64,000 nucleotides of DNA from Anthoceros angustus (Eukaryota; Plantae; Anthocerotophyta), in contig MU008163.1 of assembly GCA_010909165.1 (NCBI GenBank), forward strand, positions 806,001 to 870,000, read 5' to 3'. The notes under the pieces are model-generated. The model ran no database searches, was not told the origin of the DNA, and saw only the letters and a program-made list of their open reading frames with translations. A program made the position numbers and the translations under genes. Of this stretch, positions 22,789-61,508 are shown in pieces; position 1 is the stretch's first letter; each line of letters starts with the position of its first letter.

Positions 22789-25420
22789 ATGGCGATGATT
22801 GTAGCCGACAGGCGGAGTTGGGAGCAACTCGTGAAACTGTCCGCTTCTTCACGCTGGCTCTTAATCCTGGCTCTCGCCTCTGCTTTCCTGACGTCCCTGA
22901 AATGCGTAAAGGGAGCACGGGAGGCCGATAGGATCAGTCGCCTGCCGGGGCAACCAGAAGTCCCGTTTGCGCAGTTCGCCGGGTACGTTCCGGTGGACCA
23001 GGACAAGCAGCGGGTATTCTTCTACTACTTCGTGGAGGCCTGGCGTGCCAATCCCAGCGACTATCCCTTCGTGTTGTGGCTCAATGGAGGTACCCAGTGC
23101 GGACCGGATCACAAATTCATGCTTTGTTTGCATCGCCGCATTTGAACCTCCGAGACCAACCCAGCTGCCATCCTCGTGCAGGACCTGGATGCTCGTCTGT
23201 CGGAGGAGGTGGGTTCGGGGAAATCGGCCCATTCTGGCCCAACGGATACGGAACCGGGCTGAGGATCAACTCGCACGCCTGGACAAACGGTACGCTCTCC
23301 TCTGCGAGCGAGATTGTTGCTTCCCATTTGTGTTTGACACGGTGTGTGTTAACGTTGTGGGCGCGCGGCAGAGGCCAACATTCTGTTCGTAGAAAGCCCC
23401 GCAGGCGTCGGATTCTCCTACTCCAACGACAGTAGCGACTACAAGTACTACGACGACAAGTTGGTCGGTGCGTATACGTAGAGGCCGGAGGATCGTTGGA
23501 ACAAGTCTTTCCCTTCTTGCAATGCAAGACGTCTTGTTTTTGCTTTCAACTCACTCACAGTGACCTCGAATGCTCGAGTGCAGCCCATGATAATCTCCAA
23601 TTCCTTCTCAACTGGCTCGACGAGTTTCCGGAGTACAAGACTCGAGACTTCTACATCACCGGGGAAAGCTATGCAGGTGCGGGGCTGTCTGCTGCTAATA
23701 TGTGCTCTTTCGAATTCCTCAGCGTCAGTGCCTTGAATTGACGGTGTGTTGTATGCTTTTTCTTTCAGGCCACTACATACCAGATTTGACGTATCTCGTC
23801 ATCCAGCATAACCGAGTTCCTGGAAACTACAAGTTCAATCTGAAGGGAGTGGCTGTAAGTGATCAATTCCAATCTCGCTGGTGCCCTTTTGTGAATGTTG
23901 GAGGATTCCTGGAAGTGCAGTATAGTACAGCTGGGGGTAGCACAAGTTGTCCAATTGCAATTTTGCAAGTTCTGAAACTGATTTCATACTTTTGCATTGC
24001 TGCATCTTGCAGATTGGGAACCCGTTTTTGAGCTTAGAGTACGACCAGGCATCGATCTACGACTACCGCTACACGCATGGATTCACTTCCGAGTCCACAT
24101 ACCGCGGCATCCTTGACAATTGCGTCTTTGCAGACTACGATTACACGGATCCTGGCTACAACCAGACCGAGGGGTGCGTTGATTTTCTGAGACTCAGCGA
24201 TGAGGAGGTGGGAGATTTCATAAACCCGTACGATGTCATCGTGGACGTGTGCCTCCCTGCTCAAGCAATGCAAGAAATTCGGCTCAAGAAAAACGTGAGT
24301 CGCGCAACGACGCCTCTGTCCTTCGAGGATTCCGGACATCGCTCTTGTCCTGTTCGGTCGGCAGCAGGTGCGCACATTTCATCGAAGCTGACGCCGCTTC
24401 TTCGTGCCGATCGCTCTGTGGCAGATTGCTCATAAAAGCATCGGGAACGACGTCTGCCTTGATACGGAGGAGGAATACTATCTGAATCTGCCGTCCGTTC
24501 AGATCGCGCTCCACGTTTATGATCATCACATCTACTGGACTGACTGCAGCGAGTAAGCTTTCATTTCGCTCTCTTGTTTTGTTAACGTTTCTGCATCTCT
24601 GGTTGCCAGTTCATGCGACTCTTGTCCCTGTATGAAACATGCAGCATTGTCACCTTCCCCGCTTATAATCCTGCCGACCTGAAGCGAGATCTGGTGCCCG
24701 TCCTCGGGGAGATTGTGAAGAGCGGCATCCCTCTCCTCATTTTTAGGTTAGTCTGTCCATTTCAAGCAGTCATGGCTCGGGTTGCATGTGTTTCTGACCT
24801 GCGGTGTGCGAGCAGCCTTTGCTCTGACTGCATGTGTTTTTGACCCGCGGTGTTCCAACATTTGTTGCTCGTGTTGCATATGGACATATGCGTTTTTGAC
24901 CACAGGCGTTCCAGTCGTTGCTCGGGCACCTTGTGTTTCTGACTGGAATGTCCTTTCCTCCAGTGGAGATCAAGATGACGTGGTTCCTCTCAGCGGAACG
25001 AGAATACAGATTGACGGCCTAGCCACCACTCTGGGCCTGAACGTGACGCTGCCGTATTCGTCGTGGTTCCACAACAATCAGGTCAGGATGGGCCAGATCA
25101 TGCCAGGACAGAAGTATCTTCATGGATGATCTCGTGTACAGTGTCTTACTCCCACGTACAATGCTTTAATGTATCAGGTTGGAGGATGGCAGATCGTGTA
25201 TGGCAACCAGCAGCTGAGCTTTGCCACAGTCAGGGGGGCAGCGCACATGGTACCGTACTCCCAACCTGCCAGGGCTCTGGGGCTTTTCAAGTCCTTCCTA
25301 CGTATAGAGCCACTGGACCCTGTTCCTCCCCCGTCTCCTCCTCCCGCACCCTTTCCTACAGGTTTTCCTCCTACTCCAGGAGGGTTACCTTACCCTCCTG
25401 CTGCCAGTCCCTCTTTGTAA
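22789..25420 (+). CDS. Serine carboxypeptidase-like protein (S10, carboxypeptidase II-like), 10 exons, Pro-rich C-terminal tail (SCPL-A)
   Basis: [38 protein letters not shown] (Ser, ~23667), SGDQD (Asp), [12 protein letters not shown] (His), all introns GT-AG. Confidence 0.93.
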
Positions 25421-30397: not shown

Positions 30398-31247
30398 TTG
30401 GTAGAAATATAGCTTCCCTTCTAGGTGTTTGAGGACAACAAAACCAAGTAAGGCTTGCAAACGTTGTGGCAAATGATATCTTCATGCTTCTGGTCGACGA
30501 GACAAAGGAAGAACTCCACGTTCGAAATTTGTCTGAAGAGTAATCATCTTCAGAGACTCACGAAAACTCTCAGCGTGAATGGTACTAGCCCCAACAACTT
30601 CACCAGAAGACTCTACTTGGTCACCTTCCTCTAGAAGCATGTCTGTCCATGTATCACCAAGGCGAGCTAACATGTTATGAAGAACACAACATGCTGCAAC
30701 CCAGCGGACTACCTCCCGCATATCCCGAGGACATCTTATCTGCTGCCTCATTTCTCGAAGGGAGGCCCAACGAGATTTCAAAATACCTATGCAGTGCTCA
30801 TTCCTAACTCTACTTTTGGCAAGGCAAAAATTGAATTCTGCATTTTCCAGCACATTTGAAGCAGGAGCCTTGTACGCAGGTATACAGTTGGTAGACAAAC
30901 CGTAGGCAGAATCTGCAAATATGTACTCCCCTGCTGAAAAGTGAGTTTGCGGATCCTTGTACAGTTTCATCCAGTGGAACACAAACGAGTCTGCACACCG
31001 ACCAGGACAACCCACATGCAGGGGCAGTGATTCGTTTGTCATCGCAAACCACTTGCATGTTGATGGAATACCTGGCAAAGAGAGGTAGTGCAAGCTTAGT
31101 ACTCGTGTCTTGGGTTACAGCAAGCCCTCAAAACACATATTGTAGCATACTGTGGCACGACTTTTGCTGACGGCCAGCCGGGCGCGCACAATCCCGTGTC
31201 GTTGTAGTAAGGGGTCCGTTCCACAGGGAATGGTCTCGTGCTTATTC

Positions 31248-50978: not shown

Positions 50979-51386
50979 AGAGTCTCAGGGCGGTGGTGCC
51001 TTTCCACCGGCCAGTTTCGGTACTTTAGCAGTAGGAGCTGTCGGCTGGCTAATCCGCCACTACCATCGATACTTCCGTCTTGTGAACAGCTTAGCAACCG
51101 TTATACGTAATACATGTCCATATCCAGGCCACCTTGCGTCCAGAGGACGGTCTTTGTTTTTCTTTTTGGTGACTCCTATCTCCTACTACAGTGCTAGTGA
51201 CAAGGCGGACAGCCCACTGCTGTTTTTCATCCAGGTGCTGCATTGTGGGCTGAAGGAATAAGACGGCGTTGGCGATCTTGATCCGAAAGCTGGGCCTCCA
51301 CGGTGCTCCGCATATAAGGGCCATGCTTCTTCTTGACATGATCAGAGCACAGTTCCAGAGGTTCTGCAGAGCACAGGATATACGTC

Positions 51387-53667
51387 ATGGCTCACCAGCG
51401 CAGGATGCTCTGCCTGTTGTTGTTTGCTTGCATCAGTGCGGTGCTCAGAGTGTCAGGGGCTCCTGACAGCGACAGAATTGTGTCACTCCCGGGGCAGCCT
51501 GCAGCTCCTTTTTCACTCTACTCTGGATATGTGACCGTTGATAAGGACCACGGCAGAGCCCTGTTTTACTTCTTTGCGGAAGCAGCTAGCAATGCAAGTA
51601 GCAAGCCGCTTGTCCTCTGGCTAAATGGAGGTATCAGCATGGCTGCCCAGGCTAATGGAATCCCAGTGCCAGTCATGTAGCAGTTGGTCAATTGGACTAC
51701 CCGTAGAACTTGCAAGGGCTGAATAATTTCCAAACGTGGGTGGGTGCAGGGCCCGGATGTTCGTCCTTGGGAGGTGGTGCCTTCAGCGAGTTGGGCCCTT
51801 TTTTTCCTAACCCCGACGGCACGCCGGGGCTTATTGCCAACCCTTATTCCTGGAATCAAGGTACCACGCTCCTGCGATCAGACCATCAGGCAAGCCTGAT
51901 GTGTTGATGCGGAACCTGGACATCCTGAAGAGTGAAGTTTTATCATCACTTAACATCTCATTTCGTGCAGAGGCAAACGTCATCTTCCTGGAGAGTCCCG
52001 CTGGAGTGGGGTTCTCCTATTCCAACACCTCCTCGGATCTGTTGCTCTGGGATGATAGCAGAGTCGGTAAGCTCTACAAGGCTCCATATATCTCACATCG
52101 TGCACGAGTCTTCCAGATGCCCCACTGTATGTCTACCTGCTGCCACCTGATATCCTGAAAATGGATGAACATATCAGCCGATGATTCCCTGGCGTTTCTA
52201 AACGGCTGGATCGACAAGTTTCCAGAATACCAGGGCAGAGATTTGTACCTCGCTGGAGAAGACTACGCAGGTAACCATCTCCATTCTGCAGTTGAATGGT
52301 CTCGGCTCATGGTCACCTCAAGACGTTCACACTGACCAACCCACCAAGAGTACAACAGGACACTACATTCCAGACTTGGCAATTCGAATCATCAAGTTCA
52401 GCAAAATCCCAGCAAACTACAACTTCAACTTGAAGGGCGTTCTCGTGAGTCCTAATCCCTGCAAACCATGTCCACAGCTCGCGGCACTCTCGAGCTCCAA
52501 CCGGGGCCCGATTCATGCAAGTATTGGTAGTGCACAGCTGAAGCCCACATTTCCATTTCTTGCTGCGCAGCTTGGAAATCCGTATTTGTCTCTTCCCACG
52601 GACATGGCGGCCAATTCCAACTACACTTTTTCCCACGGCGCAATGTCCGAGCAGACGTTCGAGTCCATTATAGAAAACTGCAACGGATTCGAGGACTTCG
52701 ACTGGGCATCTGTTAATTGGAACCTCAGCGACGCCTGTATCAACGCGCTGTTTGACAGCCTTGGCGAGAGCTCAGACTTCGTCAATCCCTATGATGTGAT
52801 TGTGGATGTCTGCCTCCCCGAAGCCGCGAAGCAGGAACTCACGTTCGAGAACATCCGCTCTGTAAGAAAACTGCATCATGCTGATCAATTCCTAACTTCA
52901 GTCGCGGATGATCTTTCCCTTTCCCCAGGTCACACATATCTGGTCTGCAGCAGCAGCAGGGAATAAATCAGCGCCAAGTCAGCTTGGGAACCGACGTCTG
53001 CATTAACAACGAGGTGTTGCAATACCTGAGCCTGCGGGACGTACAGCAGGCTCTCAACGTTCCCTGGCAGGTGAGCTGGAGTCTGTGTACTGACGCAATC
53101 GGCTACAATCTCAGCGACATGAAACGCGACATGCTACCCGAGCTCGTGGAGATCATTCAGGCCGATATCCCCGTTGTGCTATTCAGGTAACCTACTGGGT
53201 CCATACACAAATTTCCTCATCCCGATGTGGCTCAACACGATCAATCTCTAACCCCGTCGGGCATGTCCCAACAGTGGAGACCAAGACGCCGTTGTCCCTT
53301 TTGTGGGAACGAGGCACCTCGGCATCAAGCTCGCCCAAGAGTTGAACCTAACTGCTTCAGATTACGGCGTTTGGTTTGTCGACAAGCAGGTGAGGATGGC
53401 ACTGGCGGCCGCAGATGACTCTCCATTTCAAATTAGCACTGCGGATGGCATGTCCTCCAGCACATGGAATGAAAGCTGACAAAGGTGATGGAAACCGGGA
53501 TGCAGGTGGCTGGATGGAGACAGAATTTCGGACCCACAAACATTCTGACCTTTGCAACCGTGAGGGGAGCAGCTCACATGGTCGCAATCAGCCAACCGGC
53601 TCGAGCGCTGCAACTGTTTGCCTCTTTCCTGGCCCACTCGCCTCTGCCCACCATGCCTCCATTTTAG
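51387..53667 (+). CDS. SCPL paralog B, 9 exons, intact frame, nucleophile motif GEDYAG (Ser to Asp)
   Basis: Exons 51387-51630, 51750-51860, 51971-52066, 52178-52270, 52359-52444, 52571-52861, 52951-53186, 53275-53389, 53506-53667. GAC at 52261-52263. SGDQD and RGAAHMV are retained. Confidence 0.92.
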
Positions 53668-53989
53668 CCCTGCCTGTCACGGTCCTATGACCTGCAAAAC
53701 GAGCGTCTCTAGACGTTCGCACTCGTTTCAAAGTCACCTACCTCGTCATGTTCCATTTACAGTAGCCAACCACCACTCCTTTCACACCTGCGAAAACGAG
53801 CTTATATGATTATTCCAGCGACAAGAACGCTGGATGCTGCTCAATTGGCTGGAGTCTTTTTCAAGGCTTAAGAAATTTATCTGTGATCTCTAATAATGAT
53901 AATAGAGTACATTAGAACAACAAGTTGAAGAATTTTATTTAAGTTTACTAAGATTTTTTTTTCTCATCATCGGACTTGATACTTGATAA

Positions 53990-54206
53990 CTTGTACCATC
54001 GTGTACCTAAGCGTACCTAATCTACTAGTACCAAGAGCATCCATTCCCTCTAGACACCCCATCTTGACAACTTGTCCCATCCTGTACCTAACTTACTTGT
54101 ACTAAGAGCATCCATTCCCTCTAGACACCTCATCCAAGTATGCTTGTACCATCATGTACCTAAGTTACTTGTTCTAAGGGCATCCATTCCCTCTAGGCAC
54201 CTCATC
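53990..54206. repeat. ~72-bp imperfect tandem repeat x3
   Basis: cttgtaccatc..tacctaa..aagagcatccattccctctagacac occurs three times. Confidence 0.85.
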
Positions 54207-54906
54207 GTTGAAGTGCAGGATGCTTAACAACAACATTACTATAAATGTGTCTCCATATATTAAAGATATAAACCCTATCTTGATATCTATTTTTTTAAGG
54301 AGTTCCTAACTTCCTAACAACTAGTCCTAGTCTCATCTTCAATCTTATCTCAAGCAAGTTCTGCAATTTCTTAATTTTCACTATAATATTATTTTTCCCT
54401 TATGGTTGTCCAGCTTGCTTAAGCTCAATCCAGAGAAGCCTCTTGTGTATTCTGCATATTCAATCCTGTAAGCAATTGGAATAAGGCGTCTTGCAAGACC
54501 TTGATGAGAACTAAAGCAAAACCCATGTATCGGCCTTCATCCATGTCCTTGCCTGTGGGCTACAACGAGATCTCCCGTCTACAGTTACAAGGCCCACAGT
54601 ACTAAATGCAGTTCAGTGTTTTCCAAGAGTCCCATTCCGGAGCAGAAGAGATAAGAGTGATTCATACTGTTGGCCAAGATCTGTTTCATAGCCGGCTCCA
54701 GCGTGTAGTCCTAGCGTGCAGAAGACGGCCTCATTCGTACATTGAAATTGACGGACATTGAAATTGCCCACCATAGGAGGTGTTTAATGGCTAATCAGCC
54801 GCTACCATCGATGCTTCCGTCCTACGAACAGCTTAGCAACCATAATAAGTAGTACATGTCCATAGCCCGTACAGAAGTGGGTCTTGTGCTTCGTTTTGGT
54901 GATTCA

Positions 54907-54993
54907 GATCTCCTATCGACAGTGCTAGTGACAAGGATCTCCTATCGACAGTGCTAGTGACAAGGATCTCCTATCGACAGTGCTAGTGACAAG
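54907..54993. repeat. Perfect 29-bp x3 tandem repeat in the upstream region of SCPL-C
   Basis: gatctcctatcgacagtgctagtgacaag at 54907, 54936 and 54965. Confidence 0.97.
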
Positions 54994-55196
54994 GCGGACA
55001 GCCCACTGCTTTTTTTCATGCAGGCGCTGCATTGTGAGCTGAAGGAACAAGACGCCGGCTGACGGCGTTGGCAACCTTGATCTGAAAGCAGGGCCTCCAC
55101 AGTGCTCCGCAGATAAGGGCCATGCTTCCTCCTCATGCTCACACCAAATGACCGCTGCACATTTTCACAGGTTCTGCAGAGCTCAGGATTCGCATC

Positions 55197-57435
55197 ATGG
55201 GTCACCAGCGCAGGATGCTCTGCCTGTTGTTGTTTGCTTGCATCAGGGCGGTGCTCAGAGTGTCAGGGGCTCCTGACAGCGACAAAATTGTTTCACTACC
55301 GGGGCAGCCTGCAGTTCCCTTTTCACTCTACTCTGGATATGTGACTGTTGATAAGGACCACGGCAGAGCCCTATTTTACTTCTTTACGGAAGCGGCTAGC
55401 AATGCAAGTAGCAAGCCGCTTGTCCTCTGGCTAAATGGAGGTATCAGCATGGCTGCCCAGGCTAATGGAATCCCAGTGCCAGTCATGTAGCATTTGATCA
55501 ATTGGACCACCTGTAGAACTTGCAAGAACTGAATAATTTCCAAACGTGGGTGCAGGGCCCGGATGTTCGTCCTTGGGAGGTGCCTTCAGCGAGCTGGGCC
55601 CCTTTTTCCCTAACCCCGATGGCACGCCGGGGCTTATTGCCAACCCTTATTCCTGGAATCAAGGTACTACACTCCTGCCATCAGACAAATGCCTGATGTG
55701 TTGATGCAGAACCTGGACATCCTGCAGAGTGAAGTTTTATGATCACTTAACATCTCATTTCGGGCAGAGGCAAACATCATCTTCCTGGAGAGTCCTGCAG
55801 GAGTAGGATTCTCCTATTCCAACACCTCCTCGGACCTGTCGGACTGGGATGAGGGCAAAATCGGTAAGCTCTCCGATGCTCCATATATTTCACATCCTGC
55901 AATAGTCCTCCACGTGCCCCACAAAAATAATACCGGCTAATACCCTGAAAAATCATGCCACTGAATACATCAGCCGAAGATTCCCTGGCTTTTCTTCTGG
56001 GCTGGCTCGAGAAGTTCCCAGAATACCAGGGCAGGGATTTCTACATCACTGGAGAAGACTACGCAGGTAACCAATCTCCATTCTCTAGTTGAATTGAGTC
56101 CCAACCCATGGTCACCTCAACCACTTTCATACTGACCAACCCAACAAGAGGACAACAGGACACTACGTTCCAGACTTAGCAGTTCTTGTCATCAATTTCA
56201 GCAAAAATCCAGGAAAGTACAACTTCAACTTGAAGGGCGTTCTCGTGAGTCCTAATCCCTGCAAACCATGCACTCTCAAGAGCTCCATCCGGGCCGCCCA
56301 ATTCATGTAACACTTTGTTGTGCACAGCTGAAGCCCACATTTCCATTTCTTGCTGCGCAGCTTGGAAATCCGTATTTGTCTGCTGCAACGGACATGGCGG
56401 CCTTTTACGACTACAGTTTTTCCCACGGCTTAATCTCCGAGCAGATATACGAATCCATTAAACAAGTCTGCAACTTCTCCAACTTTGACTATGGATCTTA
56501 TGAGTGGGGCGTCGGCGTGGATTGTGTCGTCGCGCTGTTTCACAGCGCTAACGAGACTGGAGCCTACCTCAATGCCTACGATATCGTTGGGAATATCTGC
56601 CTCCCCGAAGCCGCGCAGCAGGAATTCATGTTCGACTTCATCCGCTCTGTAAGAAACTGCAATGGCATCATTCATCAATTGCTAACCTCACTGGCAGATG
56701 GATCTTTCCCTTTCCCCAGCTTACAAATATGTTGGTTTGCAGCTGCAGCAAGGGGTGTCAAACAAGCGCCAAACCAGCTTGGGAACCGACGTCTGCATTC
56801 ACAACCAGGTGTTGCAGTACCTGAGCCTGCCCGAAGTACAGCAGGCTCTTCACGTGCCCTGGCAGGTGAGCTGGAGTATGTGCACCTTCGCAATCAGCTA
56901 CAATCTCAGCGCCTTTAAACGCGACATCCTCCCCGAGGTCGTGGAGATCATTCAAGCCGAAATCCCTGTTGTGCTGTTCAGGTAACCTACTGGGTCCATG
57001 CATAAATTTCCTCATCTCGATGTGGATCAAGACGATCAATCTGTGACCCCGTCCCGAGGGCATGCCCCAACAGTGGAGACCAGGACGTCGTTGTCCCTTT
57101 TGTGGGAACGAGGCACCTCAGCATCAAGCTCGGCAAAGACCTGAATCTGACGCCTTCAGATTACGGGGTTTGGTTTGTGGACAAGCAAGTAAGGATGAAT
57201 CAGACTGCCTTTTAAATTGGCACCGCGGATGGCATGTCAGCTGACAAAGGTGATGAAACCCGGCATGCAGGTGGCTGGATGGAGACAGACTTTCGGACCC
57301 ACTAACATCCTGACATTTGCAACCGTGAGGGAAGCAGCTCACGAGGTCCCGATCAGCCAACCGGGTCGAGCTCTGCAGCTATTTGCCTCTTTCCTGGCCC
57401 ACGCGCCTCTGCCCACCACACCTCCATTCACATGA
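55197..57435 (+). CDS. SCPL paralog C, 9 exons, intact frame, nucleophile motif GEDYAG (Ser to Asp)
   Basis: Same intron positions as paralog B. GAC at 56057-56059. SGDQD retained. The His motif reads [12 protein letters not shown]. Confidence 0.92.
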
Positions 57436-57768
57436 CCTGCAAAACGAGCAATGCAGATTTGTTTCTTGTTGCTTGAGATTTACAATTTTCACTTCACAGA
57501 TTTTATGACCTCCGTTGGTTACAAAATTTCCTACCTCCGGTAGTTATTTCAGCAACATGGTTTGGACAGAGAAAACGGATCTGCGATGTGATTACCCGCG
57601 GGCCACCTCGACCACCTTACTCTCGCTGTAATATTGCCAAATCAGGCACTTCAATATCGATTTGGAGGTGAGCTCAATATCGATTAGGAGGTGAGCTCAG
57701 TTCCGGCATGATGCTTGTCATCGGACTTCCCAGCTCAAACCAGGAACGCCTTTTGTGAGTCATAGAAA

Positions 57769-57903
57769 TGGTCACCTCAACCACGTTCACCCTGACCAAC
57801 CCACCAAGAGGACAACAGGACACTACACTCCAGACTTGGCAGTTCGAATAATCAAACACAACAAAACTCCAGGAAACTACATCTTCAACGTGACGGGCGT
57901 TCT
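57769..57903 (+). pseudogene. Orphan SCPL intron-4/exon-5 fragment
   Basis: gacaacag|GACACTACACTCCAGACTTGGCAGTTCGAATAATC (HYTPDLAVRII), closest to paralog D, with no flanking exons. Confidence 0.85.
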
Positions 57904-59084
57904 ACCCTATTGCGAAGGATATCTTTTCCCTTACTGCTTCCGGGAATCGAGCTGGTACTGAGCGTTGTGAACAGCCCTTCCGCCACACCATCATTTTAAA
58001 TTCAGATTAGGTGGCAAGTGAGCTCAGCTGCGGCGTGATACCGGGCCTTTTCTCTAACCTGAAGCCAGAGAAGCTTTTGTGCGTTCTGCTATTCAATGCA
58101 ATAAGCGCCTTGTTAGGCCTTGATGAGAACTGTAGTAGTCCCCGATGTAATGACATTCATCCATGATTCCATGTCCTTGCCTGTCTTCTAAAACGAATCT
58201 CCTATCTGGAGTTTTTAGGCCCTCATGATTACATACACTTCAGTGCTTTCCAATGCTTTCCAAGTGTCACATCACAGAGCAGAAGAGACGAGACGCACAA
58301 TGTTGGCCAAGATCTGAGACAGAGCCGGCTATCCAGAGTGCAGCATCCTGAAGACGGCCTCACGTGAATCACTTCATACAAGAGACAAGACAAAGCCATG
58401 GAAGACAAAAAAAACTGCCAAACGGGAATGTCACAAGTGGTGCCAGTGCGCCACTAGTGGGCAGTGCAAAGTGCCTGACATGTCCGAAGTGTCCGAAGAA
58501 ACTTTATATATTCGCCAGCTCCGGCACAGTCTTCGGCTCGAGGAGTGTCAACTGCCTACTCCACTACCAGAGGAGCGTCTTGTGCTTCGTTTTGGTATCC
58601 GATCTCCTATGCACAGTACTAGTGACTAAGGCGACGGGCCTACTGCGTTTTCACCCAGGTGTCGCATTGTGAGGTGAAGGAACAAGACGCTGGCTGATGA
58701 CGTTGGCAATCTTCATCTCAAAGCTGGGCCTCCACGGTGCTCCACACATAAGGGCCGTGTTCCTCACATCACATGATCACTCCTCATTTCCACAGGCCAG
58801 GTGTTACGATTCTGGACTTCCAGTTACGGCCACAGCTGATCTGGACTTCCGTTTACGGCCACAGCTGATGGGTAGGTAGGATGGTTTCTCGAAGGTTCTG
58901 CACGAGTGGCCACGTGACTTGAGCGAGCATCGTCACTACAGCCAGCAGGAGTCGAAGTGTAGACAGTGGTAGACTAGTTCACAGATATAACTTAAAAGGG
59001 CGAGAGCCCGGCTGTGTCGGAGACGCCGAGTTGGAGTAAAGCGTCCGGTGCGAACGTGTAACGTCAGAGCTCAGGATATACATC

Positions 59085-61328
<2,244 letters not shown>

Positions 61329-61508
61329 CCTTCAAAACAAGCGTTTTCTGACGTCCACTCTCCTTCAGTCCAACCTAGCATAAACTGGCTAGCAAATGCA
61401 CGAGAAGAAGAAGGACCTTGTGGACTGGATGGCAGTGACACGAAGGACATGGCTGTTTCAATGGCTCAATGAGGCTGGGACTGGTTTTCCCCTGAGCGAT
61501 GGGACAAA

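Follow-up and report, generated by a model that had tools for sequence, protein, structure and literature searches.

S10 peptidases and serine carboxypeptidase-like (SCPL) acyltransferases need a serine hydroxyl for the acyl-enzyme. Within the SCPL family the closest described system is CsSCPL5 from tea, a non-catalytic companion with the triad T-D-Y, which binds CsSCPL4 and stabilises it (PMC9541279); its counterparts in grape and persimmon are VvGAT2 and DkSCPL1 (PMC9541279, PMC11886809). In DPP6 (DPPX) an Asp residue replaces the catalytic Ser, the protein is inactive, and changing the Asp back to Ser does not restore activity (PMC4350108). Dead-enzyme copies are already known in the SCPL family, although not with Asp at this position. 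Here we describe an array of four SCPL genes, designated A, B, C and D, in a 64,000-nt stretch of the genome of Anthoceros angustus (contig MU008163.1, positions 806,001 to 870,000; the whole stretch is referred to as the window), in which B and C carry Asp at the position of the catalytic Ser. We propose that B and C are paralogs of D that have lost catalysis but are maintained, acting as binding, decoy or companion proteins with low-level or conditional expression, and estimate the probability of this reading at roughly 0.52.

Results

Nucleophile codon and catalytic residues

Exon models of the four genes were built by hand. All are intact family-S10 genes on the + strand with complete reading frames and with introns of 82-217 nt which are solely of the GT..AG type (eight in each of B and C), which bears out the full frames and splice sites that a preliminary description of this DNA had ascribed to B and C. 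Mutual identity among B, C and D is 76-79% for protein and 85-87% for coding DNA, while A is ~50-55% identical to each of them. Pfam Peptidase_S10 (PF00450) was matched by exons 1, 6, 7 and 9 of B and by exon 6 of C and of D, collinearly. As judged by eye, an N-terminal hydrophobic signal-like segment and every aligned Cys residue are retained in A-D.

The sequences at 52255-52272 in B and 56051-56068 in C both read GGA GAA GAC TAC GCA GG(T), the corresponding segment of D (59926-59943) reads GGA GAA AGC TAC GCA GG(T), and A encodes GESYAG at 23661-23678. Alignment of B exon 4 with chain A of wheat serine carboxypeptidase II (1BCR, 1WHS, 1WHT, 3SC2) paired the Asp with the Ser of AGESYAG, and chain B of the same enzyme was matched by B exon 9 at VRGAGHEVP; the Asp of B and C is the counterpart of Ser146 of the wheat enzyme. 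Direct reading together with this alignment confirmed the presence of Asp (GAC) in B and C and of Ser in D (AGC) and A, as first described. The catalytic-Ser signature of S10 enzymes (G-E/D-S-Y-A/S-G) was found in A and D and was absent from B and C. The WLNGGPGCSS and SGDQD motifs and the His of the (G/E)AAH motif are retained in all four proteins, and B and C thus possess the catalytic Asp (SGDxD) and His (GxxH) of the family, with altered residues next to them. Following the catalytic His, B has HMVA where A, D and homologues have HMVP, and around the same residue C has REAAHE instead of RGAAHM. The earlier statement that the Asp and His were kept therefore holds for the two residues but not for the surroundings of the His.

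A short-read DNA contig from run X1, which may be the assembly's own sample, spans 52016-52385 with zero differing letters and hence supports GAC in B, while no exact short-read contig over the codon of C was present among the matches listed. The AGC of D is backed by RNA, as comparison of a spliced D contig with exon 4 of C gave exactly the five differences found in the assembly, including the two in the codon. Contigs of two related organisms lie on both B and C at ~92-96% identity. It is scarcely credible that an assembly or polishing artefact accounts for one or both codons. The missing contig over the codon of C would favour such an error, as would the capacity of 86%-identical paralogs to mislead polishing; against it, the codon of B lies inside an exact X1 contig, and the same two adjacent bases occur in two genes, each copy within its own copy-specific flanks.

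No Asp-for-Ser replacement was found among the 262 nearest public homologues that were fetched, where all nucleophile motifs (206/206) had Ser. The nearest proteins were angiosperm SCPL42-46 with 45-51% identity (P0017, P0004). Two exon-by-exon profile searches of the public collection returned no protein of the source lineage, only angiosperm SCPL42-46; these searches used alignments A3 and A6 (A1, A4 and A5 were excluded as badly aligned), and by local scoring both should have placed B, C and D among the five best matches. An exhaustive profile search with exon 6 of B likewise found no protein of the source lineage, the best match being 43% identical, and a metagenome DNA pattern scan with exon 4 gave zero matches. 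The term "GEDYAG" was absent from the searched literature, and a literature search combining SCPL with hornworts returned nothing relevant. A common, characterised SCPL variant of this kind would have counted against the preliminary description; the motif occurred neither among the 206 homologue motifs nor in the searched literature. Five angiosperm entries of 630-830 aa (P0190, P0191, P0071, P0075, P0078) scored as double SCPL domains, and in these annotation has probably fused neighbouring tandem SCPL genes.

Origin of the shared GAC codon

The genomic alignment of B, C and D is a mosaic. The 5' block (Table 1) appears from its sequence to be either a B-C conversion tract or a product of shared ancestry, and the upstream region is common to B and C and unlike that of D. 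Within exon 4, C equals D while B differs at 10 sites, and the two bases of the nucleophile codon are the sole sites at which D departs from both B and C. Directly before the 38-nt tract in which B equals C lies one (~52165-52252) where B is the deviating copy and C equals D, and the gene-conversion breakpoint between the two patterns is at most ~9 nt from the nucleophile codon. With A as outgroup, informative coding sites grouped B and C as sisters 35 times, vs 22 and 21 for the other two groupings. A convergent origin of the two GAC codons was rejected because the codon opens, and sits inside, the shared B=C tract and because the site patterns favour B+C. The shared GAC would thus have arisen once and be common to both genes by descent and/or conversion. 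The preliminary description had relied on a change shared by two otherwise diverged genes; the conversion tract links B and C, which are not independent carriers, although the sharing still rules out a sequencing error.

Exchange of the flanks under selection that maintains Ser in D (or Asp in C) would be expected to leave a breakpoint beside the codon. Were the Asp shown to predate the species, this breakpoint would be evidence that selection keeps the Ser of D and the Asp of B and C in place.

The same mosaic bears on the main rival explanation, which we consider rather unlikely, in which B and C are recently inactivated duplicates that are becoming pseudogenes. A late Ser-to-Asp change in one copy would have been pasted into the other by a short conversion tract, and the intact frames and the low ratio of nonsynonymous to synonymous substitution (omega) would reflect selection from before the loss, when B and C were active. 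Gene conversion is clearly active in the array, and B and C are identical over the 25 nt around the codon (52252-52276), both of which fit a recent transfer. The B=C tract around the codon, however, already contains two substitutions and one indel within ~45 nt, and two null alleles would both have needed fixation.

Constraint and divergence in B and C

Indels separate the coding from the non-coding parts of the three genes. Among the introns of B, C and D there were 25 events in ~820 nt, 19 of them not a multiple of 3, and among the exons 4 events in 1434 nt of coding sequence, all exactly 3 nt. Lineage-specific intron indels numbered 8 in B and 9 in C, and ~10 frameshifts per gene would be expected for B and C under neutrality where 0 were observed. 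No stops, frameshifts or broken splice sites were seen in the B and C models. By maximum-likelihood pairwise comparison, omega between B and C was 0.59 overall (p=0.003 vs 1) and 0.36 in the core with exon 6 excluded (p=5e-7), and B-specific changes gave a value of ~0.36. The core is therefore not near the value of 1 that, together with a lack of expression, had been named as telling against maintenance. Taken together, the sequence data suggest that B and C are not decaying genes.

Amino-acid changes between B and C cluster non-randomly in the substrate-binding cap, where a window scan gave a pN/pS of ~2.0 that was matched by 32/2000 shuffles. Within exon 6, which encodes the helical cap and was picked post hoc, omega was 2.76 (p=0.018).

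Conservation was scored at 214 columns, those in which the residue of A is also found in 80% or more of 117 angiosperm homologues; the set of 117 alone is SCPL42-dominated and uninformative, and was replaced by these columns, which are conserved in A too. At the 214 columns B had 5 unique deviations and D had 4, against 14 for C. Two of those in B lie three residues from a catalytic position, T176A ahead of the nucleophile and P451A beyond the His; those in C include G444E and M448E, one on either side of the His, and the deletion of a Gly from the GCSSLGGG loop. Because core omega is low and the deviations beside the catalytic residues differ from gene to gene, the fold would appear to be constrained while the catalytic surroundings loosen independently in B and C, which is the usual signature of a pseudoenzyme. 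The count in C against that in D is compatible with recent inactivation. B matches D at deeply conserved sites except at positions near the active site, and the two genes separately gained different substitutions beside the catalytic His, both of which argue against it.

These data also bear on whether the elbow Asp might act as a nucleophile, or as a general acid/base with the His-Asp pair, on a non-peptide substrate. B and C do show the arrangement of Asp-nucleophile hydrolases, with Asp exactly at the nucleophile elbow and a retained His and acid; two nucleotide steps led to Asp without halting at Asn or Gly intermediates, and a constrained core with a fast-diverging cap is what a change of substrate would be expected to produce. 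We nevertheless regard such chemistry as improbable. No HGXP oxyanion motif was found in the B or C protein sequences, the neighbours of the His that are conserved in A, D and homologues are altered in both proteins, C lacks one Gly in the loop after the oxyanion Gly, the pocket of both is of the carboxypeptidase type, and in DPP6 the same Ser-to-Asp change is found in an inactive protein (PMC4350108).

Expression

Run X9 was the only RNA-like run; it is from the same sample as X1 and consists of assembled contigs from which rare variants have been dropped. D was represented by a spliced 2567-nt contig with a depth of 330, the loose 3' end of which is the 3' flank of D. The joints of this contig are GT..AG at the modelled exon positions, and the gene structure common to the paralogs is thereby confirmed by RNA. 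The D contig extends ~1.18 kb past the stop codon (61329-61500 and beyond), indicating either a long 3' UTR (untranslated region) or read-through. For C a single exact unspliced contig of 197 nt was found at a depth of 3 (55166-55362), and for B there was no exact match among the X9 contigs. The search for spliced transcripts suggested in the preliminary description thus succeeded for D and not for B or C. The X9 data show low expression of B and C, not silence. Very low or undetected expression of B and C beside high expression of D would also be in keeping with recent inactivation of the two genes.

Discussion

We suggest that B and C arose by tandem duplication from an active S10 gene of clade II (carboxypeptidase-type, SCPL42-like), which is represented here by D, and that a single change of the nucleophile codon, AGC to GAC, is now present in both copies by descent and/or gene conversion. 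Because no acyl-enzyme can form without the Ser hydroxyl, B and C would be catalytically dead as S10 peptidases or acyltransferases. Selection would nonetheless have kept them as folded, secreted or vacuolar proteins with alpha/beta core, cysteines, Asp and His all in place, while the catalytic surroundings loosened and the cap over the substrate pocket diverged quickly. Their role may be that of a non-catalytic ligand- or peptide-binding protein or decoy, or of a companion which binds a catalytic paralog and stabilises it as CsSCPL5 does CsSCPL4, and they are probably expressed only at a low level or under particular conditions. The preliminary description had left a choice between pseudoenzymes and Asp-nucleophile chemistry. 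Maintained pseudoenzymes are the more probable of the two and would fit the absence of frameshifts, the core omega, the clustering of changes in the cap and the independent changes next to the catalytic His, while the chemistry found no positive support.

Several observations weigh against maintenance of B and C as non-catalytic proteins. C is significantly accelerated at conserved sites. The omega of D is also 0.5-0.6, that is, the entire array evolves fast, and the choice of exon 6 for the test of omega>1 was post hoc. Neither B nor C was co-expressed with D in X9, although contigs from a single sample are a weak test, and since the only C contig was unspliced and B had none, splicing of the two was not directly seen. 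As gene conversion is active, GAC could also be a recent copy, in which case most of the measured constraint would predate the loss. A decayed relic of another copy, between C and D, is in line with this last view.

A bolder version of the proposal, which we consider a long shot, is that B and C are the first S10 proteins with a functional elbow Asp. Either they would use the Asp as nucleophile on a substrate other than a peptide, or they would be receptors or decoys kept by selection as dead enzymes, with a cap under diversifying selection and an Asp protected from conversion by the Ser copy.

Features of the window and surroundings of the array

Coordinates of the genes, codons and tracts are collected in Table 1.

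Table 1. Features of the SCPL array, in positions of the window.
Feature	Position	Strand	Remarks
SCPL paralog A	22789-25420	+	10 exons, 518 aa; GESYAG (AGC); proline-rich C-terminal tail; used as outgroup
SCPL paralog B	51387-53667	+	9 exons, 477 aa; GEDYAG; HMVA after catalytic His
SCPL paralog C	55197-57435	+	9 exons, 477 aa; loop GCSSLGG(G)A minus one Gly
SCPL paralog D	59085-61328	+	9 exons, 478 aa; GESYAG (AGC 59932-59934); canonical, highly expressed copy
5' block, promoter to intron 2	51130-51970	+	B-C ~95% identical, D odd one out
Nucleophile position of B, GAC (Asp)	52261-52263	+	Direct reading; wheat alignment; exact X1 DNA contig
B=C tract, 38 nt	52261-52298	+	D differs at 7 sites, nucleophile codon included
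Exon 6 of B, helical cap (insertion) region	52571-52861	+	
GDQD of SGDQD catalytic-Asp motif, B	53276-53287	+	
Catalytic His codon of B	53575-53577	+	GAAH-MVA
Nucleophile position of C, GAC (Asp)	56057-56059	+	Direct reading
Catalytic His codon of C	57340-57342	+	
SCPL relic of further copy, 136 bp (intron 4 end + exon 5)	57768-57903	+	Between C and D; 90% identical to D

The relic at 57768-57903 shows that truly dead copies of the array decay to fragments. Between the conserved upstream block and the ATG, D has ~290 nt extra relative to B and C (58797-59084), which include a tandem duplication (ctggacttcc.gtttacggccacagctgat, two copies), and this extra sequence may explain the differing expression of D. 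The proline-rich tail of A (25300-25420) is extensin-like and is absent from B, C, D and the angiosperm SCPL42 homologues.

The spacer between B and C (54900-54990, 54000-54200) contains a ~29-nt unit in three tandem copies (gatctcctatcgacagtgctagtgacaagg) and a ~60-nt unit, also present three times, each copy of which ends in gcatccattccctctagacacc. Reads from every run accumulate over 53987-54386, which is probably a dispersed repeat.

The 26 kb interval between A and B holds only transposon remains (30482-50629, - strand), namely DDE_Tnp_4 at 30482-31090 and pieces of Copia-type gag, integrase and reverse transcriptase in two groups, at 34.6-36.5 kb and 45.7-50.3 kb. A biosynthetic gene cluster context was rejected, as this interval contains Copia and DDE transposon remains and nothing else.

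Comparison with known systems

The best structural and sequence relatives of B and C are wheat serine carboxypeptidase II (1WHS, 1WHT, 1BCR, 3SC2) and SCPL42-46, with which they share WLNGGPGCSS, GE-x-YAG, SGDxD and GAxH and a two-chain architecture with a linker. The nucleophile is Ser in these relatives, whereas it is replaced by Asp in B and C.

An elbow Asp with a His-acid pair is also found in epoxide hydrolases and haloalkane dehalogenases. Unlike them, B and C have no HGXP and appear to lack the cap Tyr/Trp arrangement known from those enzymes, and the pocket of B and C suits a peptide C-terminus; judged from the proteins as encoded, the resemblance to Asp-nucleophile hydrolases would rest on a single residue.

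As in CsSCPL5, DkSCPL1 and VvGAT2, B and C are S10/SCPL paralogs with a disabled triad in an intact gene and with a catalytic paralog alongside. The CsSCPL5 group belongs to angiosperm clade IA and is of the acyltransferase type, with a GDSYSG-like motif, the triad T-D-Y and co-expression with the partner, whereas B and C are of the clade-II carboxypeptidase type with D-D-H, come from a non-seed plant and showed no co-expression with D in X9. To our knowledge, the dead-enzyme SCPL paralogs demonstrated to date all come from acyltransferase clades of seed plants. The locus is a clean natural experiment, with three copies of 86% nucleotide identity that exchange sequence by conversion and differ in the nucleophile codon.

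DPP6, of the same clan SC, resembles B and C in having the alpha/beta-hydrolase peptidase fold, an elbow Asp in place of Ser and a retained His and Asp; it is inactive and has a role in binding. It differs in belonging to family S9B, in its beta-propeller domain and in being an animal membrane protein with an ion-channel partner. If our reading of B and C is correct, they would constitute two pseudoenzymes within a clade of carboxypeptidase type, in a non-seed plant, reached by the same Ser-to-Asp swap as in DPP6, and this route to a dead enzyme would recur in clan SC.

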